Of a stretch of DNA of 64,000 bases, positions 6,551-63,873 are shown piece by piece. Every line of letters starts with the position of its first letter. Position 1 is the stretch's first letter. The stretch is from NCBI GenBank assembly GCA_964035545.1, contig OZ037773.1, forward strand, positions 7,221,751 through 7,285,750, written 5' to 3'. The notes beneath the pieces are model-generated. The model did no database searches. It worked only from the letters and a program-made list of their open reading frames with translations, and was not told the DNA's origin. A program made the position numbers and the translations under genes. The DNA is from Bugula neritina (Eukaryota; Animalia; Bryozoa).

Positions 6551-8778
6551 TAAACTCACGCTACAATAGGGCTATTTTGCCATCCCCACGTCAGAATAGG
6601 ACACGGAGGGCACGCTCGCGGGCAAGTCTGGGCAAGTCCAAGACACCTAATATGACCACTTTTACTTACATTTTTGTAGTGTTTTCGTATAAGAAATTGG
6701 ATAAAATGTTGATAAAACAGTTGAAAAGCATGCAAACTTTTGCTCAAATGTAATAAATAACCTGGAAGCTTACCGCCTTTAAGAATACCACTATCAGACA
6801 ATATCAATAATCAGTATGAATAAAACGAAAGATAACAGACTATTGCTAGTACTATTACATTTACTATTAGGCTACTATTAGTATTGGTATTACTATTACT
6901 ATTAGTATTAATATAATTATTACATTTACTGTTACACTTACAGTGTGAGTGTTACTGTTAGTGTTAGACAGTTACACTTACTGTTAGTGTTAGCAAATAA
7001 GAAGTAAATTTAGTTTTACTACAAATATAAGTTTAACTTTAAGTCTAACTTTATAGTTATTAACTATAAAGCTATATTTAAACTAAAACTTGAAGCCTGA
7101 AGGCTGAAGCCGAAGCTGAGAAGCAGTGATTGTCTCATTCACATTGTCATTGTGATTGTGATTGTGAAGGCTGAGGGATTGAATTTGCTTCAATTAAATA
7201 TCAATGATTATTGCAATTGAGTAATGCGAAAATTCTGTGTAGACAACGAATCAAAAGATACAGAAGCTATTTACAGAGCTTTAAATGCCACCTACCTTCA
7301 AAAAATGTGTATAAAATCAGTGTGATTTAACTTTTAAAAATAATTTATAATTATACCCTCTCACATTGCAGGAAGCTGAAAATTGTTTTATTGGCTGCGA
7401 GCATAGCCTCTGTCTTAAACGCACAAATAGCCACGATCTTTCCTTGAAATAAACTCGCAAGCGCTGGAGCTACAAGAAAACAACTCCTAATAATAAACCA
7501 CAAACACTTTTAGAGCTAATTGCATATTTCACGTATATTATAATTTATATATATATATATATATATCTACCAATGAACTACAACCAAATATCTCTAGTTC
7601 AGTTTTGTATACCCAAAACCTCCAACAAGTTAGCCAATGATTTTGTACATAAAATATTGTTTTTCGTGAAAGGGTATATTATGTGTAACACTTACCACTA
7701 ATGTTTGTGTTAATCTGGTGTGGAGTAAAAAAGTTTTCACTAATTTGAAGCCGGCCAAGATTGACATCGAATCTATATAAGGTTCACGATCTCATATTAT
7801 ATAGAACAAGCCACAGGGATTTGTTTATTTCAAAAACCAAAGTAAACCTTGAAAACTGGAGATTGTACGCAAAGATGAATTTAAATGAGGTCAGACAACT
7901 CAATGACCCAAATATAGATGTTTAAACTCACCTGGAAAAATAAGAATCGCTGTATCACAAAAATTATTTTGGAAAGGCGGTTTAGTTTAGTTTTCTAACT
8001 CATTATGAGTAGTTATAGCTCACAACATGTCAAAAAGTCGATTTACTGTACTTCATACTTCATAACATTTGCAGCAGCAAAATATTATGTAGCTAGATGC
8101 TTTTAATAAATTATACACAGGATAGAGGTACCCTGTTCAGTATGAAGTGAGCTTCAGTCAACTCAATGCTGATATGAAGTTTTTCTGACGGTGAACACTG
8201 CAAGCTAGTTTGGTGTCATGGGATTTCAAATATCCAAATAAATAAAGCACTTTTTAACAATGTATAATATATTATGAGCTGAATAAAAAAATTAGGTTAT
8301 ACTATTTTCAAGATTGTTTTTACAAATATATAGAAATTAAGAGCAATTACTATATACAGAAATATTGTGTAGTATTAATACTTACAGAGGATAAAAAAAA
8401 TATATATCTTACTAACCCATATAAAATTAATTTTAGGAAATGCACACAAACCAAAAATAAACTTTACAAAATTATTCGAAACTTGAAAATTTGTTGACAA
8501 GATGAACTCTAAACTTCTAAAAAATATCCCAATTTAAATATAGAAGGAACTGCATGGCACAAGCTGTTAAAATGGTAAAAAGAATGCCAGAGATAAAAAA
8601 TATGACAAGGCATGAAAAAGTAAAACATGAAATGCAAAACTACAGAATAAAAAATTCTCCAACCCACAGAGCAAGCAGTAAAGTGCTAAGTAAATTTATA
8701 ATAAAATAATATGAATTTTTAAAGAAAGGAAAGGCCCTGAAGTCAACCATCTGAGAGTGAACAAATAGATCTCAAGAT

Positions 8779-11700
8779 TCAGTGATAGTCAGTAAACACC
8801 TGTAACAGAGATATTCAGTGATACAATAGTTCGAGTAATTGATTAAGACAATATTTTAGTAGCATTTGAATGAAATCCATGGAACGTCATAATAACATCA
8901 AATAAATTACTTCAGATTCAAAAAATGAATTAATGATGATGCAATATACTTTTTCTTAACTTATGGCTAGACCTGAACTATTAGGATTAACAAGTATATT
9001 CAAACATGAGCTGTTCGAAACCATCAACCGTGCCACTACTACCGCCGCTTCCGTCACTGTTACTACTACTACTGATACTAGCACTACTATAACTGCTAAT
9101 ACACCGCCATCAGGGCTAGGTGACAGAGTACACAGTTAATCAAGCTATGGGGGGGGGGGGGGGGGGGAGAAGAATCACTATTTTATGACTCACCATTCCT
9201 GGATGGTTAAACTCTATCTCAGATGCCAGGGACACAAGTTTTTGCAAGCTATCCTGTGATTGGTTAGTTGAAAGGGACACCAGTGAAGGAGATGAAACTG
9301 TAAAAAATAACAGAAAACATTCATGAAAATATTAATACATATTTTGAACATGAAATATTTTGAAGAGTGTAACATTGGGTTGTGATAAGCCTCAGGCACC
9401 CGTCAAGTATTTGCTACGTCTCTGAACCACCCCTTAGTAACTCAAGTGATGCTAAAAAGCTGAATCTACATTAGCCAGGATTATGTAGAAGAAACGATCA
9501 CAAAGTAATCTGGTTTAATTTTGAAAAACATTAGAATTCACTTCCGGTTAGAAAATTGCTTAACAGAAGCAAAGTGGAAAAATACTTTGTGATGATCACA
9601 TGACTAAATAAAGCACATCGTACGCTGGCAGCAAGTAAACAGAAGTAGATGACTGACCTATGAGCTCACTATCCAATGACCTCGCTGACTCAGATGTGAC
9701 TAGCATTGAGTGGTTATCTTCAGGACTTGTAGACAAGCTGCTGCCAGGCTGCTGCTGAGTAGGCAGCCTCAATGGCAGAGACTTGTCCGCCAGAGGCTAC
9801 AAGATTTTAGTATTTTATTATATTCAGGAAAATATTTAAAACATTCAGAGTTCAAACAAATGAGGCTTTTTAATAGACTGAGAGTCAACCACACGACCTG
9901 AAACTTTGGGAACAGGGTCTATTGAAAAAAACAGGTATATAATGTTTTTAGATATGTTGCTTAGATAAAATAACAAAAAGAAAAAACGGCAATTGTGCAT
10001 TCTTTAAGAGTTTTAGTAGCGGTTTTCTTGAACATAATCGAGTAAAATTAAAATGCACCGAAAAAGTTAAACTTACCAAAAGCTTCATACATTATATTAA
10101 AGTACATACTGGTGCATCCTGGGTAATTTGATTCTGGCAGACTTCCATGAGACTTGAAAAATCTTCAAAGTGATTCACATCAAGGAAATCAGTTGCAGCT
10201 GAGTCATCTACTAACAAAAAATTAAATTTATGTGATTTATCATTACTACCGCTGCTACCACTACTACTACCACTACTACTACCACTACCACTACTTCTAC
10301 TGCTACTACCACCACTACCACCACTACTACTACTACTACTGCTACTACTACTACTACCACTACTTCTACTGTTGCTACTACTGCTACTACTACTACCACT
10401 ACTTATACTACTGCGACAACTAGTACTAACATTACTGGTGCAGCTGAATGGCTGAGCCCAGATTAGACTAATGAAGTTACTAAAACTGAAAACCTAAACT
10501 AAGTCTATCAAACTGAGTTCACAAACACAGTAAAAGCTGTCAGTTGAAAAACTCACAGCTTCCTCTAATCTTTTCCGTGTCTTCCTTCGACTTTAAATCA
10601 TCTCGAAGTCTCCTAAACGTCTTCAATGCTTGCCTGCAATTATAAATCAAATTTTATTTTCTAGAACTTTCTACAGCATGTAAATTGTACACACTATTAT
10701 AACTTCTATAATGTATTGAATATATACCAATAGTAAACCTATTACATGCTTACATCTCACAACCCAGTCCTATACTTACTAAACACTTACATTTCCACCA
10801 ACTTGCCACAGTTGGACCAATGATGAACGGCGTCATCGTCTATGGTGTCTCTTATATCATCATAGACTATGTTAGACTGAGTGTCAAGGACTTTCTGTAA
10901 GCATACATCAGTAATAGCTTCGTTACATACACTCAATAACATGTGTGTACAGCAATCACTCAGACTAATAATAAAATCTCAATACTAAATAGACTAGAGA
11001 ATAAGTTGCTTGCTAGAAAATTCACTATAAAAATAATAAGATTACTGGTTGTTAGTTTGCCAGCATAATACAAACAAATAGACTTGTGAGAAACTCTGCA
11101 TGCGATACTAAGTGCTACCTAGGAGTTATCCCACCATTATGGGAACACAGCACAAGACAACACACAGCATTCTCACACCTTGGTATATCCGTTCATCAAC
11201 TGCTGGGCATGGCTCATGGTAACCTCCTCCAGGTCGTTTGCCAGAGAAGAGCTGATCACCTCCGTCTGGTTACGGCACGATGGATCTGTCATAGTATGAA
11301 CTCTGCACCAGAACTGACCTGCAGCACACAAACAACGGCATGTCTATTGCATCATCACTTGGCAATACAAGATGACATGTGATCAACACCTGGTCTAGTG
11401 ATATCATAATGGCTATTACAGTTTAAGCAACAGCATCATAGCGAAAACATATGACATCATAGCGAAAACATATGACATAGCGAAAACACACGACGTCAGA
11501 GAAAGCTTAAAGACGTGACATCTTGATGCAAACACTGGATGCCATAGTGTTGAGATGGACACATAATGTGAGTACATAGAATGGTGAATACAACCATATC
11601 TATGTCTCCTACACAGAGGTGGTGGTTACCTAGGTTAGAACCGTCAAAGGCTGGCTCTGGTGGCTCATTCTGGTCCGGCAAATAAAAAGTGGGAGATGAC

Positions 11701-14700
11701 GACTCATTCTGAATGGTGTCGTCAGGTGAAGGATACTGTGACACATCTGATGACATGACACCTGCAACATAAGCAGGTGCTCTATAAAGTATGCACACAT
11801 AGCAGTTAGTGGCAGAAGTTAGTAAAGGTAAGAAAAAAGTTTAGCAGTTGAATTTTGGTGAACACTTGGTCTAAAAATTCTCATCTGACCAACTCTCCCA
11901 ACTACAAACCAACTTTTTAAGATAGTAATGGGAATTTTCAGAAAAAATAATGGTTATTTAAAGCATACTGAAAGGAGCAAATAATTTATTTCATCTACTG
12001 CCCAACCTGCCTTTTAGGCTTTAGCAATGTCCAAATATAATTTCTTTATTGGATAAGCTAGCAGTGATACACATATCTGCTATATTGATGAATTCCAAAG
12101 ACATTGACTGTAAGAAAGTAACTACCAATATGTTTTCCACACAGTAGCAGTCTGAAACCAGGAAAATATCTACAACATGTGTTAGAGTATACCTGACTGA
12201 GCATTATCCCCACCAACATTTGCCAGTTGCTGTGGTTCCGTGGAGTAAGACTCTGTGCCACTAATATGAACACCTGCAAGAAATGATATATTATATGACA
12301 CACACCTGCAAGAGATGACATGCTATATGACACACACCTGCAAGAGATGACATGCTATATGACACGCACCTGCAAGAGATGACATGTTATATGACACACA
12401 CCTGCAAGAGATGACATGTCATACGACACACACCTGCAAGAGATGACATGTCATATAGCACACACCTGCAAGAGATGACATATTATAAGACACACACCTG
12501 AAAGAGACAGTTTTCATACCAGTATTCGTAAAAGCACCTCAAAAAGAAAGAGAAAACATCGATGGCACGGGCTGAAAGAGAAAGAGTTACCTGACATGTT
12601 GTAAACCATATCTTTCAGAGTGCCGTCAGACAAATTAGGCATGTCCGCTGTACCAACTGAGGTAAAGTAGCTGACAGGCTGAAGGCTAGCTGACTGTGCA
12701 ACATAGGCAGCAGGTAGGTCAGTATCTACAGAGGCAGCATACGACACATGTGGTGAGCTCGTTCCCGAAGAATAGTCCGAGAATGTTTGCTGGCCAGTCA
12801 AACCAGAAGCAGGCATCAGTCCAGATGTGCTGGCACAGTGACTACGATGGGCATTGAGAGGTGATGAAGCATATGGTTGAGCACAGTTACCACCCACTGT
12901 GTTACTCACATTAGCTCCGTAACTGTCAGTATAGCCGGACGTAACATTGTCTTCTGGTGAACTGACATATGCAGAAGGTGCTCCAGGACTGGCATACGGA
13001 CTGACATAACTTGCAGGTGCTTTGGTGCCTGCAGGACTTGTGTATGGGCTGGCATACTCTGGAAAAGTATGGCTGCCTCCAGGGCTAGTATATGGACTAA
13101 CATAGCTAGGAGGAGCATCACTGCTCCCAGGATTTGCATAAGGATGAACATAGTCGGAGAAAAACGGATTTGTACCAGGGCTCGAGTATGAACTGGAACT
13201 CGGACTGATGTACTCAGCTGGTGGATGAGTACCCTTTGGACTAGTGTACCCTGCAGATGGATGACTACCCCCTGGACTGGGGTACCCTGCAGATGGATGA
13301 CTACCCCCTGGACTGGGGTACCCTGCAGATGGATGACTACCCCCTGGACTGGGGTACCCTGCAGATGGATGACTACCCCCTGGACTAGTGTATCGTGCAG
13401 GAGCATGCGTACCTCCTACTGGCGGCTGACCAGGGGGTTGGCTATAAGACAAGCCCTCATTGTGATTAGAATATCCGTCACTTGTATGAGATGGTGCTGG
13501 TATGTCACGAGCAGCGACTGAGCTCTCATTGTCAGGCGGCAGCACCATTTGCCCGTTGGACATCATTCGCATCATCGACATCACCTGACTTTTAGAGATT
13601 TTGTTTTCTCCCAGGTGCTCACGTAGGTATCGCTGCCCTTCCTTCTCACTGTAAATTATAGAACCACAGCTAATTTTAGTTGTATTCTTGTAAACTTTGA
13701 CACTAGAGCTTCAAACAGAGAGACAAAACTTTCATATCAAATTACCTTTCCCAGATTGCACCAACAAGTTTAAGTGTACCACGGTTTTGACTATATATCA
13801 TAAAATGTAGTGTTAAAAGTGCTTAAAGCTGATATAATTATTTTGTGAAAATCTTTAAGATCAACTAAGACTTTCATCTCAGTCTGAGATGCGTGTGATG
13901 GCTTGCTGCAAATGCAAGCTATATACTTATATATACGCACCTGACAATGTAGTTCATACAGACGATATACTGCGGGCACTTGGATGTGTTGTATACAATA
14001 GTGGCCCGAGTTTGCAGCCAGCACCATTCATTGTTCTTGTTAAGAAACCTGTAGTACTTGCTGATATTCGTACCTGCTGTCATCACTACAACACAAACCA
14101 GTAGACATCAGTAGACACCGAACTAAGTTACACAACAGTAGCCTCTGTTTCCAGTTACACAACAGTAGCCCGTATTCTAAGTTACACTAAATTAGCCTGT
14201 GTCCCTAATTACACTGCAGTAGCTTGTGCTCAAAGTTACATTACATTAGTTTGTACTTCTATCATCTAAACTCTAAAGTAAATAAACTAGGAACAGTTAC
14301 TAAACAAATTTAAAAAAAATTCTTGCTCTAAAATTAGATAAATGAAAATTAAAGATATATGCGGAGAGATTTTTTTTCGACAGTGAAAAAATTCGTACCA
14401 TTTATACCGTGGAAAAATAAGGTTATAGACAGTAGGAGTTGTCAACTCAGAAAAGACCGGTTTGCTGAGTTTTCTACCAGCCATTACACCAACATTTAGG
14501 GCACAGATGGCAAAAGTTTAGTCCACCACGTTTTTTTTATTTATCTGTTGTAACCGCAAACACCATATTACACCTTTCATCAATAAAGAAATGAATAAAA
14601 ATATAAGTTGTTTTTCCAACTGATTATTAGATTAAACATTCCGGTATAACCCGATACATGCCAACAGAGGTGTTAGGATTACTTTAAGAGATTCTCAGAC

Positions 14701-17700
14701 AGCCTAAAGCTGAGTCAGAAAATGCCAGACAATTGTTTTACTGTTGAGGAAACAATGAGTGATATCCTAAGATGGCATATTGTGTAGATAATATATTGAC
14801 ACTTGCAATGTCAGACCTCATGTATATTGCTCATAAAATCATGTGCCCCATCAATCTTCGCTGCATGGCAACATTCCATAGCCAAAAATTTCCATCATGA
14901 TCATTAAAAGTTGCTGCTAACCATGCATCTGATTGGCTATTATAGGGAGACCAAATGCTGCACTCTAGAACAGCTAACTGATGCTTTAAACACTATTCAG
15001 TTTTAATTTACCAAAAAAGTGAAGAGTAACGCAGACAATAATCAGTTTAAACATAAGGTGACCAAAGTTGCCTTTAGACTTTATGTTAAATCTAGTTGAA
15101 GATATCTTTAACACAAAATCAAACATGTATTCAAAAAAGTATGTTTCGCATTGTGTGAAGACTTCACTGACATATTTAGCTGCTAAATCGGAAGGAAGGA
15201 AAAGCGTCACTGTGATGATAACAATCCTGTCATTGTATAATCCTCGTGTCAAAATATTTCACTCCAACAAATAAACCATGACACTTGCTGCAAGTACTCT
15301 AAATATTTTAATAAACATGAAAATTGTTCCCATTAATAGCCACCATGATGTGTGCGAAATCATTACTGTGGTGTACCTGCAGATTTGGAGCTAAGGGCAT
15401 GTTTGGTATAAACATTAGTTTATAGACTGAGCCTACTGCATGAGAATCAGTGCCATCCCTCTTAAATTTCACTCATTTAGCCGAGTCACTTCCACTACCT
15501 CAATTTTCATCTTTTCAATTACATAAAGCTGATAGATTTGTTAACACTTTGGAGCTTACGCTGATTATTAGAATTGCAATTAACAAAAAAGATCCAAAGT
15601 TACATAAATGGAAATTAATTATTTTACAATTTTAAAAATATCATATTCCATTTTTCAGAGTGGAGCCTGGTGAAACTGATTAATCTGAAGATATGCATTT
15701 TATTTTATGAGAGAAATTGGGTGAACAATTTCAAAATGTTTATGGGCTCAGCTTTAAATAACACACTTCAATTTAACATTAATAATACATTTCAATAATA
15801 ACAATACACTTCAGTTTAAACTTAGACTTTAAAAAACAGGAAGAAATTTAGTGATAATTTTACATTTGATTACACCTGCTGTTTTATATTATGATTATTG
15901 ATTACCACTCTTACCCATTAAAATGCCAAGAAATAAGAATAATTTCAATATATAAATGTATTTTTAGTTGACAACTAAAATAACAAAAGTATATAAAAAT
16001 GACCTCTTTCAATTAAACCGCTTTTTCAAATTTTTCTAAGATTTTTTAACTGAAAGTGTGATGGGAGGGCTGGTTGCTGAAATCACGACTCAAAGCCATG
16101 TGAATATCACGAATACAATGCATGATGCTAGTGGATTATATTTTAACAAAATACATAATACGTGACAAAACACCGATAAAAGTCTTGGCAGTTAGACTTA
16201 ATGGAAGAGAGAACATTGGGGTGAAGACAAGAAATAGAGCTACCATTTGGCACTCTTTCGAAGAAATGAAGTAAAAAAGCGAACACATGTTAAACTTGAG
16301 GCTTTGGTACTTTAACATGCAACGTATGACCTCTGTTAATGAAAGAAACTATTCTTGATAAAGTGAAATAGTTTTATTTTAGATTCATTTTCGATAATAA
16401 AATTTATTTCAATTCGTGAAGGCATAATCAGAAAAAGAAAATTTTTGAGTCTTAATGGTAGAATTTAACAATTTTAAGGTAATTTATTAGTTTTTAAGAT
16501 AGCAAATGACGCAGTGATAATACAGTTAAATTTAATAACATTGTAGTTGATCCATCTTGACTGCTGATAGCCATGTGACTAAAACTTACAATTGCTAATA
16601 GTCATGTGACTAAAACTTACAACTGCTAATAATCATGTGACTAAAACTTACAACTGCTAATAGTCATGTGACTAAAACTTACAACTGCTAATAGTCATGT
16701 GACTAGAACTTACAACTGCTAATAGTCATGTGACTAAAACTTACAACTGCTAATAATCATGTGACTAAAACTTACAACTGCTAATAGTCATGTGACTAAA
16801 ACTTACAACTGCTAATAGTCATGTGACTAAAACTTACAACTGCTAATAGTCATGTGACTAAAACTTACAACTGCTAATAGTCATGTGACTAAAACTTACA
16901 ACTGCTAATAATTATGTGACTAAAACTTACGGCTGCTGTGACATTTGCCGCACATCTCCAAGTCCCCGGGATGGTGGTATCTGTACATAGAGTTACCAGG
17001 AATCTCATCAGGTTCATAGCCCAACATGGTAGACAACCTAGACAGAGTTAAAACACAGCAGGTACAACAGTACGATACAAATCATACAGCATGTTATACC
17101 AGACCATGTTCTAGTATTGGCTATTATAAAATATTGTTTTTTTATCAGCTGTGGTCTAGCGGTTAGAGCACTGTCCTATTTAGTGCTAGGTTCTATTCTG
17201 TATTGGCTATGTCACAAAGAGCACCAGACCCCAACTGGACTTCTACCACAGCACCACTTAAACCCATACAATATGAAATATTCAAACCAGTTGATCTAGA
17301 ATTGGTTATTACAAGAAAGTAGATGCTGTATACAGAGTAGACTTGTTATCATACAGGTTCATGGGCTACACTCTAACCAACGAAAATCATATATAATATT
17401 GAATTGGTTAACACACACTCAACCCTTTGACCTATCGAATAGCATACAATTATGAATATCTCATAAATCACAGCTCAACAGTTGCAAACATTGCTGAAGT
17501 TAGTCCATCACATTCCACAGCACAGATAAACAAGAATTCTATTTAAATTTAAAGTCTGCAATTTTTTGCTTTGAAAGAGACCAAGGTTACAGTGAGTAAG
17601 CATAGTTAATGATGCAATCAAGTTGATGTGTATACTTGGTGGTGAGAACATCCTTGGTAAAGGTTATTAATCCTGCAAGCTATCCAGGGAGAATAATCAT

Positions 17701-19908: not shown

Positions 19909-19942
<34 letters not shown>

Positions 19943-22346
19943 TAATATATATATAAATATAATTTTAGTTTGATGTAACTATTACTGTTTAAAAATTTAT
20001 TTATTACTAGTTTATTTGATATTACTATTAGTTTATTTAAAAATAGTTTATTTATTACTGCACAATAGTTTATTTTGAGACCTGATTCAAACCAATATGT
20101 TTCTCCACGTTGTCCGAGACGTACACGATCTCTTTCTCAGGAGATATGATTATGAAGAAGCCACTCAAAGACTCTAACATCAAGTTCCCCTCTCCAATAT
20201 CTGACTTGAGCTTCTCGAATGCATCTTTATCTGCAACACACCACAACCTTGTCAGCTGGTCACAGAATATAGGCAGCTGGTCACAGAATACAGGCAGCTG
20301 GTCACAGAATATAGGCAGCTGGTCACAGAATATAGGCAGCTGGTCACAGAATACAGGCAGCTGGTCACAGAATATAGGCAGCTGGTCACAGAATATAGGC
20401 AGCTGGTCACAGAATATAGGCAGCTGGTCACAGAATATAGGCAGCTGGTCACAGAATACAGGCAGCTGGTCACAGAATATAGGCAGCTGGTCACAGAATA
20501 TAGGCAGCTGGTCACAGAATATAGGCAGCTGGTCACAGAATATAGGCAGCTGGTCACAGAATATAGGCGGCTGGTCACAGAATATAGGCAGCTGGTCACA
20601 GAATATAGGCAGCTGGTCACAGAATACAGGCAGCTGGTCACAGAATATAGGCAGCTGGTCACAGAATATAGGCAGCTGGTCACAGAATATAGGCAGCTGG
20701 TCACAGAATATAGGCAGCTGGTCACAGAATATAGGCGGCTGGTCACAGAATATAGGCAGCTGGTCACAGAATACAAGCAGACACATAGTGCCAGGTTAGG
20801 CCTTGTGATTGCTAGAACTATATCTTTACAGATGCTAGACAACCTATAATAATGTCTATTAGAAATAATAAAATCCCCACATCTGAAAGTGTTGGTTAGC
20901 TGATACAAAAAATGCAATGAGTAGCCCTGAAAATCCTATTATGAATCTTGAGGCAACCAAAAGAGAACTGGAGATAGAGTTAAATATGTCATCAACACAC
21001 TGATGTCTATTTTGTGTTTCTTTAAAAAAAAATCTGCTGACCTTCTCTACGGCTAGACAGCGTCTAGACAGCAGAGACAGCCTGGTTGACCAGCATCTAG
21101 CTGGTGATCCCATTACTGTCAGAAACAGACTCACATCTTTAATTATGTTTTCTAAGAATTTTAGCCCTTGTGCTAAACAGAGTTTCAATAAAAAAATAAA
21201 AAACTTGGGCTATAAAAATTTCTCCACTACTGCACCTAAATAGTCCCCTTTCCCTGCCGTGGTCCTTCGAGGGCGGGGGGGGGGGGGGGGGGGATTACTG
21301 CACCTACATGTGCACCTCAAATATTTACCAACATGTTTCATCTCCCTGTATAATAGAGTTATTCACTGATATCGAAGCTGTATTTTCAAGTCAAAAACAT
21401 ATTTTCAATAATCAGAACAAAGTTATGAAAAACAAATAGCGTATATTTATTTTTACACCCAATTGATAGCCATCAGTGATATTAATTCATATTCCATTTG
21501 ATATAATTATTCTATTTTAGGTAACAACATTGATCTAAATAATTGGTGTGTATTGATATACCTTTGAGCAGGTGGTTTACAGTAAACAGAAAATAATTTA
21601 TTATTTGATGTACTAATAGGATACTGCAATGCACTTGCTACAGGTAACAACAACTAACTCATTCAGACAGGTGGGGAGGGGTGGATACAGAAAAGGAGAG
21701 GTGGGGAGGGGTGGATATAGATATGGAGAGGTGGGGAGGGGTGGATATAGATATGGAGAGCTTACAAGAGGTGGATACAGTTGGGGAGAGGTTACGAGAG
21801 GTGGATACAGGTGAGGAGAGGTTACGAGAGGTGGATACAGGTGAGAAGTGGATACAGGTGGGGAGAGGTGGATACAGGTGGGGAGAGGTTACGAGAGGTG
21901 GATACAGGTTGAACTAAAGTAACTTATAACTGAAGTTTTAGACCACTAAACATGTAGAGGATGAAACCTTGCCATATATTGAGACCAAAACCCTTATGCC
22001 CCCTCGCCCTATGGCTGAATGGTAGGTCACCTTAAATCTAAACCACCAGCGCTGCAGCATCTACTTGAATTTACCAGATAAGTGAAAGCAGCTAAGCTAT
22101 AGGCAACACAGTAAGATTTTCAGGAGAATAGAAACAGAGTGTATAGGGTTTCTCACCAGAACCCATGTAGTTCCTTAGTTTGAGAAAAGTTATGGCTAGT
22201 CTGAGAATAGATGCCTTGTCCAGCCTCTTTGTGACGTTCCTGGGTAGCGGCAGCAAGTCAGCAATCTCGCATATCTCCTTCGACTCATCTGTACGTCTCT
22301 GTTTAGCATGAACTCTCGACTTCTCAGCTTTCTTTACTTGAGCCAT
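8779..22346 (-). CDS. bHLH-PAS transcription factor, divergent HIF-alpha/SIM/NPAS-class (class I), about 998 aa
   Basis: Exons: 22346-22157 (bHLH, EKSRVHAKQRR..LPLPRNVTKRLDKASILRLAITFLKLR), 20230-20082, 19788-19623, 18829-18669 (PAS-A), 18213-18080, 17037-16931, 14085-13941 (PAS-B/PAC, FISRHSLDLKFVYCD, YYRFLNKNNEWCWLQTRAT), 13648-12591, 12273-12193, 11761-11630, 11318-11179, 10894-10791, 10633-10557, 10210-10110, 9796-9670, 9297-9194, 8799-8779. All GT-AG and phase-consistent, totalling 2997 nt. The C-terminal exons rest on phase alone. An acceptor at 22369 with an open upstream frame means the N-terminus may be longer. Confidence 0.85.
9148..9168. repeat. Poly-G tract (about 21 nt)
   Basis: Direct G run in the last bHLH-PAS intron; a second run lies at about 21271-21293. 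Confidence 0.9.
10243..10410. repeat. (TAC/CAC)n trinucleotide microsatellite
   Basis: Seen directly; accounts for the spurious poly-Val and poly-Tyr ORFs. Confidence 0.95.
12265..12505 (-). repeat. 32-bp minisatellite whose unit contains the exon-9 splice acceptor (tcttgcag|gtgt), 8 units
   Basis: cctg at 12273, 12305, 12337, 12369, 12401, 12433, 12465 and 12497; the unit at 12273 is the in-frame acceptor. Confidence 0.9.
13215..13395 (-). repeat. Coding 36-bp repeat encoding (HPSAGYPSPGGS)n
   Basis: About 5 units within the 1058-bp exon 8 of the bHLH-PAS gene. Confidence 0.9.
14986..15300 (-). mobile_element. Possible relic of a P-element/THAP9-like transposase C-terminus in bHLH-PAS intron 6
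   Basis: The pattern CSKC...LFLPSD...EVFTQCETYF...GHLMFKLII..LHFFGK resembles the CxxC / L..PS / E..F / H..L...H...K tail of P-family transposases. Recognised by eye only; no termini found. Confidence 0.3.
16571..16935 (-). repeat. 31-bp minisatellite whose unit contains the exon-6 splice donor (gtaagttttagtcacat), 12 units
   Basis: taaaacttac recurs every 31 bp from 16580 to 16921; the last unit is the real donor at 16930. Confidence 0.92.
20252..20780. repeat. 21-bp minisatellite (agctggtcacagaatataggc), about 25 units, intron 1 of the bHLH-PAS gene
   Basis: Highly homogeneous; ends about 20 bp from the exon-2 acceptor; source of the CDQLPIF, SWSQNIG and SCLYSVT ORFs. Confidence 0.95.
21143..21239 (-). 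mobile_element. Truncated copy of the ~160-bp MITE family
   Basis: The reverse complement ttaggtgcagtagtggagaaat...gcccaagtt...aaattcttagaaaacataa matches the left half of 22705-22867. Confidence 0.6.
21665..21910. repeat. G-rich ~30-bp minisatellite (gtggatacaggtggggagaggttacgagag)
   Basis: About 8 diverged units seen directly. Confidence 0.85.
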
Positions 22347-22704
22347 TTCAACCCCTGCTTTCTCACAACTACAAGAGTGACCAGAGTTTCAGAGAATATT
22401 TGAATTGTGTTTGTGTTGTGCTATTGTACCCACTAGTTCCAGTATAAATTGCGTGTCATAAAGGTTTTCAAGGATATTGGATAAAAATAAATATATATTA
22501 TAAGGGTGCAGCTATATTAAGCTTTTTAATAACAAATTAATTTAGTAAACTTGCAGTTGAAATTGTTAAAAGTAAACACTTTATATACCAAACATGGTCG
22601 TCCACACAGCTCGTTTGCTGGCCTAACATTTCCTGTTTCCTTATTTGTGAGTTTGGCTAAATTGAAAGTAGAGTATTTGTAGTGGCACATGCTGAGGGGG
22701 GGCC

Positions 22705-22867
22705 TTAGGAGCAGTAGTGGAGAAATTGGGAGAGCCTAAGTTCTTCAAATTTCTTTATCGATTTTAGTTTGGGGCATGAGTTGAAATTCTTGCAAGAACA
22801 TAACTTCTTTTGCTACATTTCTAATCTAGAACACAGGCTCTTCCCAATTTCTCCATTATTGCAACTA
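22705..22867. mobile_element. ~160-bp MITE with ~30-bp TIRs (Tourist/Harbinger-like), copy A
   Basis: Ends tta-ggagcagtagtggagaaattgggagagcct and aggctcttcccaatttctccattattgcaacta; homologous to 38915-39067 and 46309-46471. Superfamily assignment is tentative. Confidence 0.75.
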
Positions 22868-25800
22868 CCTCCTAATAAATATACCGTCATCAAAAACTGC
22901 AGCAGAGCAATACCTACTGCTTACCAAGACGGAACAGATTTAGAGAAAGGCGGAACATTCTAGAATAACTACCGTATAGACTCACGTCACTCAACTAATT
23001 TTATAGCCCTTTGAAAAATAATGTTGAGTGATTTCTAGCAGAGAGTTTACATCTCAAGTTGTAGACTAAGTTTGCGGCATTTCATAATGAGAAGGATCAC
23101 CACCCCTCCCAACTGTAAACAACTCTGTTGAAAATCACAGGTTGGGTTTATTGCAAGACATTCTCAATTAATGTGGAAACAGAATACAGCTTCATGAACT
23201 TGAGCTGTGGATTCACTCAACCAACTCAACTTGCTGACACAAATCTACGGACACAAATGCACCATAAGTGTCAGCTCCTATAAGAAAATTTTGATCTCCA
23301 ATTGGATGTCCATCAAAACCAGAATTTAGAGCCTCACCTAAACAGCTTGGATTCACACCAAGTGAAATGCTTTGGGTAGCAATATTTGGAAATTCTCTAC
23401 CCTATTTCATTAAATTCAAATTTCTATATTTCTAGGTGCTATAGGCAGGTAGTTACGTACAATCAAACTTTCATTTATTAGGGTAATGTATACTATATAC
23501 ATCACTTTTATTAGCAGGAAATTCATCAAAAATTATTGTTTAGTGATGGTTTTAGTTCATTTCAGCCTATCATTAAACTGATATTACAAGGCAAAAAACA
23601 AGAGCAAAACAATTTCATCTACACACACTACAGACTAAAGTTTATAAGAAGTGCAATATAATGTCTAATATACAAGTTCAAAAGGTAGGCCTGCCTACAA
23701 AGCCAGTTTATGGCATTTACAATGCATATTTTAATATTTTAGAGGCACTATAATATTATTTGATCAGAATGTTTCATGTTCAATATTTACTATGTCTATG
23801 TCTATGTCTCTGGGTACTTTATTACATTATTACATTTACTAGGTTGTATTACTATAATTATAGTACACAGGCTAGACTACAGTCAAAACCTGAATTATAT
23901 CTTAGTGCTGTTGGCCACAGCTTCGTAAAGGTGTCTACTGTAACACAGTTAAGTTTATCTGAGGTTGGTGCAACTGATATGGTGGTTAACAGATTATGAC
24001 TGAAACAGGCAAACAACCAATACTTGGTCACAAATACAAACAGTAATTTATCATCATCATGTCAACAGAATCTGGTAAACGCAGACTGAGGAGACCAAAG
24101 AAACAGATCGGAGGTCAAATAAAAACTGTTGCCAAGTATAATAAACCACAAGGAGAGAAGGTTGAAATGGTAAAAATGATATCCAGAGCAGAATGTGGTT
24201 TTTAATAATTTATTGTCAGTGTAATTACATTAATTATTGCCCAATACAAGAGCAGTTTTCGCAGGTGCATGAGAGATTCAGTAAACCTGCTATGGTTATG
24301 CCTGTATGCTAATAGCAAATAGTGTTGCCAAAACTCAAATATATTAAATCTGTTTCTAGCTCTGGGCTCACCAAGTACAAACTCTCAATTCAACAAGAAC
24401 TAGCATCTCTAAAAGTAAGAGGTTTAATTAAAACAATTTTACAATAAAAAGAAATAGAATGATGGAAGAAAAAATTACTGAGCAACTATTCGAAGAGCAA
24501 AAGGCAAACTTATTGTAAACAAGTGACGGCATCAGTTCCAAATTTATATTTACATGCTTTTACTAGTCTAATGTGGCAGCTGACAAAAGACGGATGACCT
24601 AGTTTTTAATACCATGAAGCATAAAAATGGAAAGAAAAACATTGTAATAAAATGGGTCGCTTCTTAAGACTCCAAGATAAAATAGTGAATACAGCCACTC
24701 AACGGCCAAACTTGAAGGTTGGTCCCTAAAAGCTGTTTATGATCTTCGTAACAAAACATCTACTTTAGTCTAGCCCAGGCTTTCCCATCTACCCTACTCA
24801 AAAAGTAACTAATGCAGCTGCAGCAGTTGTTGGCGAATCAATGTTAATAATTACCCATAATGCATTATAAATATTACATAATTGCAGGTTGTGGGAGTAA
24901 TAAACCTTTTCTAAAAAAGATACACTGGGCAGTTGAGCAGCAATTAAGCATTAACAAACTATACTGATACTCATTACGTTACAGTAGCTAACAACTGTGT
25001 GAGACTGGGAAATAGCAAGAATGTATATGATAACCTCTGCTACATTAAATATACAGTAACAGTTTTAACAGATATTTACATATAGTTGCAAGGATAAGCA
25101 TATTTTATATGCAGATAATTTTAATGATAGTCAAGTTTGTACTGTTAGTAGAGTTAGGCTAAGCAGAGGTTTGTCACTAGTATGAAGGGTTGTACAGAAA
25201 ACAATAGCTAACTCTAACCATCAATATGAATATACCATAAAGAAGTGTTATGCAAACACCAGCAGTTTGAGTTTGAATTATGGTAGGCCACATAACTTGA
25301 CTAATTTAAGAGTAAATCGAGATATTTTTAAAACCTGCAGGCCACAGATGGAGGCGGATGAAATAAATCTATGAAAGCAAATCAAAACAACAGTTATAAT
25401 GAGACACCAACTCCAAGTGTGAATTAAATTCAGCAAAAAGCTATAAGTATATAGTGATAGTAATAAATGTTACAGTATGAACGTATCATAAGGATAATCA
25501 TAAATCATTACTTAACACTAAGAGTTACTTAATTTATAAAAGAAAACTTTTTGACCATTATATTTAAGCCTAATACTTCCTTATGTCATAATAATAAAAA
25601 AAAGCTGAGAAAAACCTCTAAGGAAAGCAGGTCTGTCTAGCCGTATTTGTATTTAATAACTCTACTATATATTAAAATCATATTACGGTATGTCAGGCAT
25701 GAATAAGCAGCAGGGAGATGTTACCTGGTGAAGACAGGATTAACACTACCTACAGAGATGGTAGGTAAACTGATTAGAGGTTTAGCTCTCATGTCTCCTG

Positions 25801-26236: not shown

Positions 26237-26386
26237 AGTTGTTCTAGAAGCAGATCCGAGTTGGGGGTGAATGAGTGCAGCAGTTTGGGGTTCTCCAGTT
26301 TGGAGTTAGGGGACATAACTCCAAACTTGAGAACCCCAAACTACTGCACTCTGTCCTCCCAACGAGGAGCTGCTTCTAGAACAATT
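26237..26386. mobile_element. 150-bp foldback (palindromic) MITE with a 9-bp flanking direct repeat
   Basis: Arms of about 70 bp (agttgttctagaagcag...gtttggagtta and taactccaaac...ctgcttctagaacaatt) with a short loop; CTATCACAG at 26228-26236 and 26387-26395. Confidence 0.8.
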
Positions 26387-28739
26387 CTATCACAGGTTGT
26401 ATTCAACGCTAGTCACAAGCAGCATGTGTAAAGTCAGTAGAAGTCAGTATTTTTACAAAGTTCTCTTTTCCAATCTAATAACTCATAACTGAGGCCCAAC
26501 ATTTGAAACGCAAATCCATTATTAGAAGTTGAACCTAATAAAACTATTTGTAAATAACTTTGTCTCAATTCAAAAGATTTCTGTAGCACACTATTTTAAG
26601 TATAAACATAATGCTTTAGAAATTAACTGAAAAACATTGTTTAAGTTATATAAAGTCTCAATCAAAATACTCAGCAATTGTATTTTTTCAAAGCTCTCCA
26701 GTTATGCTAAGCTATTATTGTTTAATCTGCTTTGAAACATTTTCTGCAGTGATGGGGCACGACTGACACGTTTGAACTTAAGCTTTAACCGAATGTGTTC
26801 CATATACAACACAGAAAAAGTGGGTTATAACATCTGTTTGTTTGAATTCAACAACTAGAAGCGGCACTATTGTCCTTTATCACAAGTCTACAGTATGTAA
26901 TTTAGCTGACAAAGTGTTGACTATTTTAAAGTTTTTGATCATACAACATGACTTTCTACAAAAAACTAGAGCTGTTCAGACCAACACTTATGCTTTATCA
27001 AAATTAGAATATTCCAGTAGAATCAGACGCAGTTGAAAACTCAATAACTCTCCAACAAATACAGTATGGAGGAATAAACTCTGAGCCTATTATCACCAGT
27101 ACAGCAGTTGGGGCCCTTCAACTAGCTAGAGGATGTTGTGTCAAAGTTTCAAAAGCACCCACTTTCATAACATCCATGGTGCAATGGAAAAGAAATGTTA
27201 TTAGAGTATAATTTTACATCTATCATACTAGCTAAAATTGAGCTATCTATGGTTGTGATTGAATCTACACTAAACTGTAAACAACAAGATAATATTTAAC
27301 AAGCTCAGGTTCAGTGCTAAACTTGTTAAACTGCTTGAGTTATGTGTAATTATGACAACTCATTAAAGTGCCTATTTGTGTTTTCAAAAGTGGACCTTAC
27401 AATAAATTAAGAGCTGTAACTTCAGTATCAAAAATAAAGCAACAACAACACAACTAATAAAACTGCACATAGTTGCTTATTACCTGAATTAAAAGAATGC
27501 CAACAAAAATGAAAATATTCAATAAAAATTACGGTATTACAGTATAAATTTTACAGCATCTGCTACTATGTTTATTATAAATAGAAATGAATAAAATGTC
27601 TAGCTTAGTGATTATAATCTATAACCTTATAGGATGTATGTCAATATAAATATAATATTACAATTATGATTTTATTTAGTTTCAGTTTCAAAATTGCAAA
27701 TAATGTAAATCACTATTAAGCATATCAATATAATTGTAAATTCTTGTTTACGACTCTAAACTAATTGCTATAAGCATGACCTTATTTTTGAATTAGAACC
27801 CTTTTAAATTGTAACTGTTACCCTAAACTTCAAGAAGTGGTTTATAATTAAGCACCTTCACTAAGACTATTAGGCTTGCAATTCATAGAGTAGCTTGAAA
27901 ATTCTGACTTTAAACATCAAACATTTTAGTTTTGTATTTAAGCATTAATATATCAATACCAATATGAATATGATTCAGTAAACACGTTAGTTGTATTTGG
28001 TCACTGCAAAGGTCTGGTTCATGTTCTCTGTTCCGCAATAAATTTAATGAAAAATCAAGCACTGAAACGATTACTGCTACTAGTACTACACTATATATAG
28101 AGTCAAACCGAGATAAAATAATTAAATTCTAACAACAAATAATAAATGATAAGCTAAATGTTATCACAACCAAGCTAATGACATAGAGCTTAACATCAAA
28201 CTTCATCAAAATAACTATATGAATATAAATATAACAATTATTAACTTTTACTTTTAGACTTTAGTGCAAGGGATTTAATCTGTCATTGTGATTATCTGTT
28301 ATCACTATGATTATGATTTATGATAACAATTATTATATTAATATTCATAATATACATGAATATAAATTATTAAATACTTTAACTGTAAATATAAGCATAA
28401 TATTAATAGAATACATAATAATAATGCTTAGCATAATCATAATGTTATTAAATAAATAATTTATGATTTAAATAAATTATTATCATGATCAATACCATGA
28501 TTATCATAAACATAATTAATATAAATAATTATAATGATGAATAATAATCATAATAATTACTATTAATAATAAAAATATTAAATTTATTCATTATTATTAT
28601 TATTTATTAATATTCTAATTGATATTCATATTCATATTGGCTATTGTATTGCATTTTACAAGTAACAATATGAATATTATTATCTTGATCTTCATTTCAA
28701 TTTCATATTACTATTACTATTAGATTATCATTTAAAATA

Positions 28740-41896: not shown

Positions 41897-44792
41897 ACTT
41901 CAATCTATAATACATTATGATTATATACTTAGTAGCACAAGCTTTTACCCAACATCTATAATGTACACCCTGCATTATATTTAGATATGCATAATTACTA
42001 CAAATAATTTGACATAATATTAAATACAATCATTATATTAAATTCATAAAAAAAAACAATTATAATGTTTCGATATAACTGGTATAGTATAACACTTTAA
42101 CTAAAATTAACTATATTGAAAGCCTAAATAACAATAAAATGTGAAAATTGGTATTATGAGAACCAAAAAAATACTGTCACTTCAAGGGTGTAACTGTCAC
42201 ATTAGGCATGAGGCTCAGTTTTATAACCAAGTCTACTAGTACTAGTAAAATTTACTATTACTATTAGTGATAACCCCATCGAAAATCGTTAGTGATTAGA
42301 CTTAAAGTTACTTTATAAGTAATAATTATTATGATTATTATTCTATACCACAAATTTAAATTACTAAACAATGATATTAATATGATACTCAATGTCAGAA
42401 TAGCCAATAACTAAATAAGAACACTTTTCAGTACTGTTATGAGTTATTGAGCGTAAACTTACAGTTAGTGTTACTAAGACTATGAGTTTACTCACACTCA
42501 AACTAAATCCCACATGGCACAAGGATAGTCTTAACTCTTAAGTAACGCTAGCCATATTTATATTACCACTCGGATTGACATTATTTTCTGAAATTGCTTT
42601 TACAATGAAACCAGCATTAAATCTTATAATCAAAATTATATTAATTATTGCCAAATGAGTAGTGGCTAATACTAATAGTAATACTTGAACTTAAAGTCCA
42701 AAGTAAAAGTTATATCATAAGGTTTGGCTTTAGTTTCAAATAATTTTTATTATAACTGTTTTATTTACATTAAATCTAATATAAATTAAAATATTACCAC
42801 CAATATTTATATCAAGTTTAACCAAGTTATTATATTTAAATCAATAATGATTATATTTATCAACTTGAACTTGATTACTAATTAGTATTATTATTTCTAA
42901 TATTAAACTAGTAAATTACTAAATAGTAAAACTAAATAGAAGTTTAATTAGTATAACTATAAGTTAAAATATTACTACTACTACGCCTACTACTAGTACT
43001 AGTACTGGTAAAAGTATAACTACTAGTACTAGTAATACTCTTACTATTAGTATTAGTAATATTAATACTAATACTAATAGTAATAGTAATACTATTACTC
43101 TTAGTGTTACTGTTAGACTTAGTGTTACTGTTACTGTGTTAGGTTGAAGTTCACAAAAGACGAAACGTTGTAATTGTAAAACTAAATTGGTAAATGTATA
43201 ACATTTACCAGTCGATACTCAGTATTTTAAAAACAAAAACTTGTATGAGTTTAAAAACTCTCACAACTAGTATAGGAATGAAAATCTCGGACAAATGTGA
43301 TTTGTCATCATGATATCTATTATAATTATGCAATACAACTAAAATTATCCTGAAGTACACGAACACTCTTTTAGACTTGGATCCTACAATGTCAGAGGAA
43401 GCTGAGAAAGACTTTATGCTCAGTAACAACATGCTCTAATAACGAGTTCCGCCGTTTTATAGCTACACTCATTCACTATAGTACCACGATTACACTTTTA
43501 GTTACAACCAAAAGTTGTTAAAAGGCAACTCCTACAACATGGGTGTTTGGGCAAAACAATTAATAAGACAACTTCAATCTAATGCAGTTATACATGGCAG
43601 ACCTCTGCTATCTCAACTATTCGACAACAATGTAAGAAATGTGTCTTAGGTAAACCATTTGATAGAAACCCTGAGCTAATTTTTAGCATTTTCGGTGCCA
43701 GTTGCAGGATAGTTTGGTTTTTCTAGTGTGAATGTTTTTCTAGTCTTAAATTTGTGGTCATCGAACGTCAACATATATAAATTCCTCTTTTGTATAGTAA
43801 ATCTTTTTAATAAATTCAACCAAAAACCAAATCAAAATAGCAACTGCTTAGCAGCCACTATTTTTCAGTATTTCTCAATCCCAACTCAACAGAACAATTG
43901 CTAGTTGTAATAATTTCATCCGTAGAAATCACAAACATTTAAGGAAACCATAATTCCTTACAGCCTTGAAACACTGAAGTTTTTGTAGTTTTGAAACCAC
44001 AAACATGTTTATTATATTAGACAAGAAACGATGCGCTTGTGAAGGAAGTAGTTTTACTGCACAACAGACCAGAAGGCAGCATTTTGCCAAATGATCATTA
44101 CAAAAGACACCAGTAAGTGATTGTAGTTGTTAGGTATTTATTGACCTGTACAAACCTTAGTAATAAATTGAAAAGGTGAATCATTTCTAGAAAACCATTC
44201 AATGCCGTCTGCATTAACTACCTGCTCGAAATTACATGTTATAAGGAGTAGCGAAGATCTGAACACACAAATTATAAAAAGGGAACTAAAATCTGCCAAC
44301 AGAATAAGTAAGTGTCATAATCATTTATATACCTTTTCAGAGACTAAATTGTTCAAAATAAAAGAGTAAAGGAGAAAATAATTAGTAGATAAAGTAATAC
44401 AGAATGAATTGCTCAATTTAACAGATAGCTCAATTTTCCATATGATAACTTTTATTACTGAAGCAAGGGTGAGAAATGTATAAAATACAATAATAGTAAC
44501 TACAATCTAGGCTCACTTCATGGGTGGGCAACGCTAAGGTAGGTAACATGGTAATTGATAAAAATCTCGCAGGTAACATGTATCTCACAAGAGATTTGAT
44601 TTATTGACCACAGATTTCCGCCAAACTGCATTCACGTTGAGTGTTGAAATACAGAAGATTTTCACGTCCCATATTCAAACACAACTGTTGAAATGTTTCG
44701 AGCTGCTGCTAGCGAGACTGTGGCATCCACGTTGACCAATTAGGAGTGATAGTAGGAGAGATATAAGTCGGTGTCTCAGCAGACGGCGGGGT

Positions 44793-61934
<17,142 letters not shown>

Positions 61935-61959
61935 GGCTAAATTTCGGCCTGTTCATTCA

Positions 61960-62230
61960 CGCAAAATTCGAAATACTACTCCCAAGCACTTGAGGCTGAG
62001 GGAAGGGAAGAAAAAATCACCTGCCAAATGCTGCTACCGGGTTGGTGTGAAATGGTCATGTGATGCACTCGATTGTTTATTATTCGTTAGAATAGCAGTG
62101 GGCGCGGTTTTGCAAAGCGGAGACAAACCTTCATAAAATGCTTCCGCATCCTCCAATTAAGAGACGACAACCACTAAAAAGTAAAACAAGTTCTACAGCT
62201 GCATAGATCACGTCGGGTAGTTAACTACCA
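61960..62230. promoter_or_regulatory. Probable promoter of alpha-actinin, likely shared with a divergent + strand gene
   Basis: Locally CpG/GC-richer stretch (gggcgcgg, cttccgc, cacgtcgg) immediately upstream of the actinin ATG exon. Confidence 0.5.
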
Positions 62231-62805
62231 ACAATTAAGTTCAATTCTTACCAATAACCAATCCCAACAACATTGATAAGCATACAAACAGTTATCAACA
62301 CACCGAGACAGCAAAAAACATGTAATTTCAATGGCTATAATATATTATTAGGGTGAAGAATTAAAATAACTTCTATGACCAAATTATTATAACTGCAAAT
62401 AGTTATTACAATGAATGAAACTCCAAGTAAGGATTAAAAAATTAACATAAAATTTTTGTTTGCAGCGTTTTAAATGTTTAATCACAAAATTTTTAAATTG
62501 ACAAGAATAAATTATAAAATATATAAAACAAAAATGCTTCTTTAGTTCGTCCTTTGAAACAAATATAATATTTGAGGTTATATTATAGCTGCCGTCTATG
62601 TCGGCTCGAGATGTTGGAGGTTTTTTAGAATTGTTATTAAGGATAATTGTGTTATTGTTATAATATAACAGTAACACAATTATCAATATTAATATCATTA
62701 ATATTTATAACTTTATTTTTTAAATATATGCTTGAAGCTGTAGTTCAATTTTTTTCATCAATAAAATTGTTTTAATTAGGTACTTGTTTTGATTTTAGTT
62801 GCAGC

Positions 62806-63873
62806 ATGAACAACTACAAGTGAGCATGAGTATAAGTATAACTATAACATTAAGTTTAACTATAACTAAAAATATTCACATTGATATTGTCATTGATGAT
62901 TGATATTCATATTCACTATCAGTATCATATTGCCACACTCACTATCACTCTAATCATCATTGTGATTTTTGCAATTCAGATTGTAATAATAATAATTATT
63001 TTTATTATGATTAACATACTGATAATCATAATATAATTATAACTGTCAACATCATGATCATGATTTTGTGTATTGATATACTATTATCCATAATACTCAT
63101 ACTCATACTGTGCAAACTATAACTATCACTGCCATGCACTCACTGTGGCATTGATTAAATGAGATTGAAAGTTAAAATATAATAAAATCAAATGATATTG
63201 TTGCAGTACTGATTAAAAAAGCTAGAGTGTTCTAATTCAAATTAGTGGTCTTTTTAAATAATTTCATTATATTTTGAAAACTAGTTTTTTTATTTTCAAC
63301 ATATTAATTTTAGCATATAAGTTATCAAAAGAGGCAATAACATGGCATATTTTTATTCTGTAAACTTAAGCTTTTTAAAACATGAAAACCGTGAATGCAT
63401 TTTGAAATATTTAAATATTTTTCATTACTAGTGTAAAATTCAACGAGTAGATATTTACAGGGTTCTCAATTTCTTGTTTATTATCAAAGGATTGTACAGC
63501 ACTGCTATAATCTACCATGACACCACACTATATAAAGCAGGCAAATTATTTTACCTAATCTCTACAATATATATGTATGACTATTGTCGAGCAGAGATCT
63601 ATGCCAAATCAGATTTATTTTAAACTAACAGTATTCGACTGCTCTGATATATTTATAATTCACAGCCAGTAGTCTTCATATATTTTTCAGATCAGCTACA
63701 GCTTTGATACTCTACATAACCAGTATGGGCAGGTCCTCAAAGCTTTTCTAATGTTGCCCTATTGACTTATAGCTGAGGCTGATATATATGCTGGTATTAC
63801 CAACTTCTTTGCTTTAACCAGAAGGACAAGAGTATGGCGACTTTCAAACAGGGCTCGAAAGCAGCTCTGCCAG
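62806..63873 (+). CDS. Probable first exons of an unidentified gene running off the right end
   Basis: Candidate exons ATGAACAACTACAA|gtgagc (62806-62819), ttttcag|63691-63732 and ttaaccag|~63822-63873|gtaagt. One phase-consistent reading is MNNYKSATALILYITSMGRRTRVWRLSNRARKQLC. Frame and identity are uncertain. Confidence 0.3.

Follow-up and report, generated by a model that had tools for sequence, protein, structure and literature searches.

What kind of DNA borders the starts of genes in the bryozoan Bugula neritina? The question arises from a 64,000-nucleotide stretch of contig OZ037773.1 (assembly GCA_964035545.1, forward-strand positions 7,221,751 to 7,285,750), which we call the window and whose positions are counted from its first letter. 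An initial annotation described in it domains of a degenerate hexamer, TNANWN (N, any base; W, A or T; S below, C or G), which we refer to as lattices. It offered two explanations: an array that binds protein or positions nucleosomes periodically, or the footprint of a mutation or modification process linked to the transcription start site (TSS). On our reading of the sequence, the domains represent cryptically simple DNA of a promoter-proximal class that is specific to the lineage and would take up the first 0.3–1.1 kb of the 5'-most intron where that intron is readable. Their arrays arise and turn over as whole units are gained or lost in the manner of slippage, and point substitutions accumulate in them at about the neutral rate of introns. 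We tentatively favour the interpretation that the lattice is slippage-built simple sequence, left as a mutational footprint close to promoters.

The degenerate domains are real. Counting in-phase T.A.W. hexamer runs of at least four units in the window gives 41 on the plus strand and 50 on the minus. The control, 30 local first-order Markov shuffles in 500-bp blocks, yields means of 2.0 and 2.5 runs, which corresponds to an excess of about 20-fold. The longest run has nine units, and none of the shuffles exceeds five. The hexamer strings quoted as examples by the initial annotation are present in the sequence at the positions it gave. A motif-free scan, which takes the identity at lag 6 minus that at lags 4, 5, 7 and 8, recovers all six domains listed there and adds four more inside two copies of a TTAA-flanked transposon with terminal inverted repeats (TIRs). 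The six score at 6749-7226, 28196-28773, 29243-29989, 42125-43240, 61522-61868 and 62711-63187. One domain is shorter than proposed, as only about 28190-28790 scores within the interval given as 27600-28740. The window as a whole has a GC content of 34% and an observed/expected ratio (o/e) of 0.40 for CpG. Between 16948 and 28188, the same scan detects no lattice domain, despite several long AT-rich introns.

Inside the domains, TNANWN is one frame only of a looser rule. We observe mosaics of short AT-rich hexamer and trimer arrays, built largely on TA-N units. The arrays have about 4–8 units each, with independent phases and many different units. Tandem Repeats Finder (TRF) reports periods of 6, 12, 18, 21, 9 and 3 with matches of 63–80% and many units per domain. 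The identity between bases is 0.51 at lag 6 and 0.37 at lag 24, and it reaches the baseline of 0.32 by lag 42. The phase is gone within about 24–36 bp, and no domain-wide phase is seen. The GC content of the lattices ranges from 16 to 29%; CpG-rich segments adjoin some domains, and none lies within a domain. TA is enriched (o/e 1.17) and AA/TT is depleted (0.85), while CpG stands at 0.37 and GpC at 1.08. Among the retained hexamers the commonest W/S patterns are WWWWWW (444), SWWWWW (157), SWSWWW (75) and SWWSWW (62). Most patterns are all-W or hold one S or two separated S, and an S almost never neighbours another S.

The behaviour of C and G is the most unusual property of these arrays. Both stand isolated at a fixed phase, and in an A_T or T_A context their identity is near random. 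Six bases downstream of a C, the o/e is 2.33 for C, 2.07 for G and 0.62 for T; downstream of an A it is 1.56 for A and 0.69 for T, meaning that A and T keep their identity. Sorted by context, S at lag 6 is the same in 119 cases and flipped in 136 for A_S_T, and the same in 66 and flipped in 56 for T_S_A. The corresponding counts are 21 and 2 for A_S_A, and 30 and 2 for T_S_T. Chains of at least three in-phase S are heterogeneous in 76 of 88 cases in A_S_T/T_S_A versus 2 of 10 in A_S_A/T_S_T. The orientation of S is close to a coin toss, and long runs of the same letter are few. Where (TAN)n runs are perfect, S flips while the W spacer is constant.

We considered two simple sources of this scramble. 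A true unit of 12 nt was rejected, as the o/e at lag 12 is 1.56 for C to C versus 1.94 for C to G. Small inversions or template switching were rejected too, since the W spacer of the TA-S-TA-W arrays stays fixed while S flips. Further grounds are that arrays of the TATSAS type are not self-complementary and that hairpin z-scores are negative in some arrays only (-3.75, -2.2) and positive in others (+0.8 to +1.8). The value of -3.75 belongs to the TA-S-TA-W arrays at 42125-43240, which form long hairpins.

The lattices lie beside the 5' ends of genes. Placement in intron 1 is read straight from the sequence for actinin only; for the other genes, the arrangement was deduced from their ATG exons together with donor-like sites and segments rich in CpG. 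At actinin (minus strand), the ATG lies at 61934, intron 1 runs from 61838 and the lattice from about 61800, approximately 40 nt past the exon-1 donor; exon 1 and its donor are conserved in a close relative. In the next gene (plus strand), the lattice begins just after the donor-like GTGAGC at 62820. The 15-nt segment ahead of this site is also preceded by an acceptor-like site and may not be exon 1. A putative donor GTAGGT (minus strand) would open the putative 5' intron of CCDC91 at 7295, and a putative GTGAAC that of CHP1 at 43154. Acceptor-like sites precede the ATG exons of PNO1 and CCDC91, and the lattices upstream of these exons likely lie in an intron of the 5' untranslated region (UTR), with a presumed 5' exon. 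Assignment of lattices to CHP1 and to bHLH-PAS rests on the gene models of the initial annotation. If bHLH-PAS starts near 22.4 kb, the domain at 28190-28790 becomes the far side of the PNO1 promoter. The view that every gene has a lattice at its 5' end fits all six host genes, directly for actinin and by inference for the rest, but it does not carry over to the genome, where a random sample of 200 kb holds two loci only. Internal introns lack comparable domains, as had been noted before, apart from transposon-borne arrays at 50110-51310.

The start of the lattice right past the exon-1 donor of actinin, and past the putative donor of the next gene, could also reflect a first-intron signal at the RNA level, such as arrays of U1-binding, branch-point or decoy sites, or intron-mediated enhancement. 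In its favour, the sense strand has somewhat fewer hexamers resembling a polyadenylation signal (PAS) than the antisense strand (12 vs 22). On the other hand, no consistent strand bias in composition is found, and the AT and GC skews have an inconsistent sign relative to the direction of transcription. Splice-like motifs (5' splice-site-like), branch-point-like motifs and stop motifs are about equally frequent on the sense and antisense strands, and the units differ freely between arrays. We regard an RNA signal as highly improbable.

To compare orthologous loci, as had been suggested at the outset, contigs of the close relative were fetched using short open reading frames (ORFs) adjoining the lattices as handles; the adjoining intron is about 16% diverged. 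At each of the four orthologous sites that were recovered (Table 1), the relative also has a lattice, with identities of 84–92% and indels of 3–41 nt. Substitution divergence is 16.3% in the pooled PNO1 and CCDC91 lattices versus 15.9% in the adjoining intron. The kind of substitution differs, however: C<->G exchanges account for 15 of 77 substitutions in the lattice vs 6 of 229 outside. In an earlier subset, with 11 of 53 in the lattice against the same 6 of 229 outside, the Fisher test gave p = 2e-5. Among A_S_T/T_S_A sites with conserved neighbours, 5 of 25 have flipped in the lattice vs 1 of 88 outside (p = 0.002), and on these counts a genome-wide context-specific mutation bias was rejected. 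An assembly artefact was rejected as well, because the Illumina-based contigs of the relative show the same style of lattice. In more distant taxa, no lattice is present at the orthologous actinin, PNO1 and CCDC91 loci, with contig GC of 38–45% at actinin. The proposed restriction to a lineage is borne out by this contrast between the relative and the more distant loci.

We also asked whether the domains belong to one repeat family. A search of the 216-Mb assembly gives no match to the flanks of the host domains other than the flanks themselves. The cores of these domains match other loci by the hundred, in either orientation, at 70–85% identity over 50–250 bp, which is the behaviour of a low-complexity class. 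With unique flanks, and with matches elsewhere confined to low-complexity cores, the domains are not one transposon or satellite family, an outcome against which the initial annotation had staked its proposal. No TIR or target-site duplication (TSD) is found at the host domains, and membership of a single family holds only for the four domains in the TTAA element.

This element is informative in itself. It measures 5275 bp and has at least 25 copies genome-wide at 96–100% identity, arranged as CpG-rich end, lattice, core, lattice and CpG-rich end. The two copies in the window are 98.6–99.1% identical, with imperfect TIRs and TTAA at both ends; copy b is without a 181-nt segment found in copy a (5223-5403). 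No ORF in the element exceeds 66 aa, and coding potential was rejected on that ground. The relative has empty sites for both copies, for copy a in contig L023, with a single TTAA, and for copy b in contig L021. A metagenome scan with a 24-mer of the transposon gave no match. Comparison of the two copies shows indels of 7, 6, 9 and 6 nt in the left lattice and one of 6 nt in the right, together with a paired C/G swap in the left. The other 3.7 kb show only point changes, 1-nt indels and the one 181-nt indel.

A second transposon-like element occupies 50110-51310 in an internal intron of actinin. Its TIR-like ends start with CAGGGTTGGGG, its subterminal perfect (TAATTG)n arrays contain the palindromic GTAATTAATTAC, and an internal inverted repeat pairs 50485-50648 with 50771-50935. 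The only lattice-like patches seen in internal introns are therefore accounted for.

Could the lattices be derived from transposons altogether, as remnants of elements with a preference for open chromatin at gene 5' ends, as footprints of their excision, or as fragments of the TTAA element? Four of the ten domains in the window lie inside the transposon, both copies are inserted less than 1 kb from a host lattice, and the element at 50110-51310 has subterminal hexamer arrays of its own. The host domains, however, have unique flanks without TIR or TSD, their matches elsewhere are limited to the low-complexity core on both strands, and the relative holds the host lattices without the transposon. 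A transposon origin seems very improbable to us.

Table 1. Positions of lattices, transposon copies, promoter regions and exons in the window, followed by the orthologous lattices in the close relative.
Feature	Position	Strand	Remarks
Host lattice	6830-7226	none	upstream of CCDC91 ATG exon, putative 5' intron
Host lattice	28188-28788	none	left of the inter-lattice region 28790-29240; GC 16%; assignment to bHLH-PAS (minus) is that of the initial annotation
Host lattice	29243-29990	none	upstream of PNO1 ATG exon, putative 5' UTR intron
Host lattice, largest	42125-43240	none	putative 5' intron of CHP1, minus-strand gene
Host lattice	61489-61880	none	start of intron 1 of actinin, minus-strand gene
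Host lattice	62711-63205	none	next gene, plus strand
Transposon-borne lattice, left, copy a	2070-2755	none	twin in copy b at 31243-31914
Transposon-borne lattice, right, copy a	5260-6275	none	twin in copy b at 34290-35241
TTAA-flanked TIR transposon, copy a	1509-6783	+	5275 bp, non-coding
TTAA-flanked TIR transposon, copy b	30662-35754	+	in PNO1 intron 2
Actinin exon 1, coding part	61839-61934	-	ATG to donor; peptide MADPYKDEY... conserved in ten metagenomic proteins
Promoter region between two lattices, actinin/next gene	61881-62710	none	CpG-rich part 61951-62300
Putative divergent promoter, PNO1 and a minus-strand transcript	28790-29240	none	region between two lattices
PNO1 ATG exon	30320-30580	+	95% identical protein in the relative
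CCDC91 ATG exon	1073-1342	-	90% identical protein in the relative
Orthologous lattice, PNO1 upstream	relative contig L021		indels of 6, 10, 18 and 14 nt, and C<->G swaps
Orthologous lattice, CCDC91 upstream	relative contig L023		transposon absent
Orthologous lattice, actinin intron 1	relative contigs L026-L029		indels of 7, 8, 24 and 41 nt
Orthologous lattice, neighbour's side of actinin promoter	relative contig L026, 452-911		same promoter side as that of the next gene

Other repeats in the window have a different character. The bHLH-PAS gene contains ordinary minisatellites at 12270-12507, 13222-13400, 16560-16937 and 20253-20780, which are 32-, 36-, 31- and 21-mers with 91–97% matches. The 36-mer falls within a long minus-strand ORF that codes for a repeat rich in proline, serine and glycine. 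A (TAC/CAC)-rich array of period 3/9/12 at 10135-10536, with 38% GC, has a high lag-6 score and is distinct from the lattice. It is probably a coding low-complexity repeat of the same gene.

The persistence of the lattices raises the possibility that they are selected, as a promoter-proximal element that acts at the level of DNA or chromatin. Such an element would be a flexible, A-tract-poor and CpG-free spacer, in which only the W/S pattern is constrained and C and G are interchangeable. It might set the behaviour of nucleosomes, insulate the promoter from gene-body methylation or counter silencing, akin to the introns of Caenorhabditis elegans that hold periodic An/Tn clusters (PATCs). The steady placement beside promoters, on both sides of divergent ones, and the retention at all four sites in the relative agree with this idea. 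So do the excess of TA over AA/TT, the in-phase S of free identity and the scarcity of long same-letter runs. Its best argument is the recently active transposon, which carries a lattice inside each CpG-rich end in its many copies. Nevertheless, substitutions accumulate at the same rate as in the neighbouring intron, large multi-unit indels are tolerated, long-range phase is missing and few loci turn up in the random sample. Moreover, the rate of C<->G exchange is far above neutral, beyond what purifying selection alone gives. We consider a selected element rather unlikely.

How common is the lattice elsewhere in the genome? In five random 40-kb blocks, the two lattice loci cover about 1.6% of bases. 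The class is specific and linked to promoters, yet it marks a subset of genes, and the window is unusually dense. In block B5, a BRPF/JADE-like gene shows a CpG-rich segment, then a 1-kb lattice and then the first long coding ORF. The same CpG-rich segment (L018 200-620 with L017 8677-8919) has an ADAM-like gene on its other side without a lattice, which shows that a shared promoter can have its lattice on one side only. In block B1, at 21950-24160 (L003 1950-4160), a two-sided lattice surrounds a 600-bp centre with few CpGs, and no long ORF is nearby. Block B4 has no lattice, although 39% of its windows are below 28% GC, and AT-richness alone is therefore insufficient.

These observations bear on the plainest alternative, in which the lattices are ordinary decayed microsatellites of unconstrained AT-rich DNA, whose presence near gene starts would reflect no more than the fact that, in a compact genome, the long introns are the first ones. 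The unit-length indels, the many TRF arrays and the neutral substitution rate are what such decay would leave. Against it, AT-rich DNA elsewhere (blocks B4 and B3) is free of lattices, and the long internal introns of bHLH-PAS hold ordinary 21-36-mer minisatellites and no lattice. Decay should leave transitions between adjacent units, yet what sets these units apart is C/G, and a two-sided arrangement around promoters recurs. This explanation is doubtful in our opinion.

Of the two options in the initial annotation, a mutation-process footprint linked to the TSS fits best, with its unit-length indels, neutral rate and C<->G exchange. The other option, a periodic array for protein binding or nucleosome positioning, is not supported: the phase fades within 24–36 bp, the arrays share no common motif, and strand polarity is inconsistent. 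Neither phasing at about 10 bp nor a phase on the scale of nucleosomes is seen, as there is no signal beyond lag 24-36. More generally, the lack of polarity and phase, the neutral rate, the turnover by slippage, the few hairpins and the CpG level of bulk DNA argue against a binding code, nucleosome phasing, an RNA signal and an unmethylated valley. Origin as an unmethylated valley was rejected outright, since CpG in the lattice is depleted as in bulk DNA. The statement that simple slippage does not explain the domains holds in part. The transposon copies differ from each other mainly by unit-length indels, as do the orthologues, which speaks for slippage, but the C/G scramble goes beyond what slippage alone would do.

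We therefore return to the slippage-built footprint. On this reading, the mosaic, which begins tens of bases past the exon-1 donor where this can be read, would mark a state of chromatin or DNA that prevails immediately past promoters used by the germ or stem line. Frequent unwinding there is one possible cause, which would promote slippage, damage to cytosine and bypass of abasic sites. The domains would then be mainly a mutational by-product and not a sequence code read by a protein. A footprint of this kind would account for three features: the restriction of lattices to a subset of genes, their presence in a mobile element that brings its own CpG-rich ends, and their lack of strand polarity and long-range phase.

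Several points weigh against this interpretation. The C/G flips are almost restricted to A_S_T and T_S_A, with the W spacer of those arrays fixed, and such a trinucleotide rule is predicted by no standard mutational mechanism. The preference for period 6 lacks an explanation, and so does the choice of genes. Some of the apparent C<->G swaps may be unit shuffling that the aligner scored as substitutions. The CpG o/e of the lattice is close to the 0.40 of the genome, and together with the GpC value this suggests that the lattice is probably methylated like bulk DNA. A transposon with two lattices, and persistence across the species split, are equally compatible with function. Finally, most TSS positions and the link to a chromatin state are themselves inferred.

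What would the lattice mean if it marks the zone past promoters of the germ or stem line? It would serve as a marker, legible in sequence alone, of transcription starts and of expression class. It would also bring to light a process of mutation, not known in model organisms, that combines six-base slippage with flips of C:G to G:C. If the lattice is selected instead, it would represent a new type of element at the flanks of promoters in animals. One can imagine a lineage-specific process of the germ or stem line that flips C:G to G:C and adds hexamer slippage past active promoters, or a portable class of sequence that insulates or counters silencing and has been co-opted by transposons; we hold this pair of outcomes to be possible but somewhat unlikely. 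Either of them, if true, would amount to an undescribed promoter-proximal sequence state that can be read from sequence alone. Both outcomes bear on the boundary between promoter and gene body in compact, heavily methylated genomes. Because a mobile element carries the lattice as a module, the module could be moved into reporter constructs.

Some features of the window have a counterpart in the sponge Amphimedon queenslandica, whose compact genome is AT-rich (about 64% AT) and CpG-depleted; CpG peaks at the TSS there, and bidirectional promoters are numerous (PMC4773876, PMC4432959). Its composition matches that of the window, and the promoter descriptions for this species include no periodic or repeat class downstream of the TSS (PMC4773876, PMC4432959). 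A literature search likewise found no description of a lattice class in that position. The likeness to CpG islands that the initial annotation drew does not hold, as the lattice has neither the high GC nor the CpG o/e above about 0.6 of an island.

The closest relatives of the lattice are simple repeats. Cryptically simple sequence, generated by slippage, was reportedly described by Tautz and colleagues in 1986. With it and with degenerate microsatellites, the lattice has in common that short motifs are locally in excess, that related units form mosaics and that turnover proceeds by unit-length indels. It differs in its strong preference for period 6/3 in non-coding DNA, in its confinement to promoter-proximal DNA, and in its in-phase S, whose C/G identity is randomised according to 3-mer context. 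As in an ordinary short tandem repeat (STR), whole units are gained and lost, but a single pure unit repeated head to tail is not seen. STRs are known in yeast and human promoters, where unstable repeats are likewise concentrated near gene starts. Those are pure single arrays in the nucleosome-free promoter, whereas the lattice is a degenerate mosaic located downstream, in the first intron.

The PATCs of C. elegans have a 10-bp An/Tn periodicity over long ranges and extend through introns of germline-expressed genes and along chromosome arms. They resemble the lattice as a lineage-specific, intronic, AT-rich periodic class without conserved sequence, present in a subset of genes, and a link to expression in the germ line may be a further likeness. 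The comparison made by the initial annotation fails on the period and on the A/T tracts. Tracts of A(n)/T(n) at about 10 bp are not found in the lattice, whose dominant lag is 6, whose coherence extends over about 30 bp, whose TA is up and AA/TT down, and whose location is the promoter-proximal zone.

As for mechanism, an analogy is offered by the hypermutation zone of vertebrate immunoglobulin genes, in which AID, uracil excision and bypass by REV1 act about 0.1–2 kb past the TSS. The two share a window set by distance from the promoter and prominent C<->G transversions, and the analogy concerns mechanism only. Immunoglobulin hypermutation is somatic and specific to its loci, whereas the footprint of the lattice would be germ-line and genome-wide, with flips confined to A_S_T and T_S_A.

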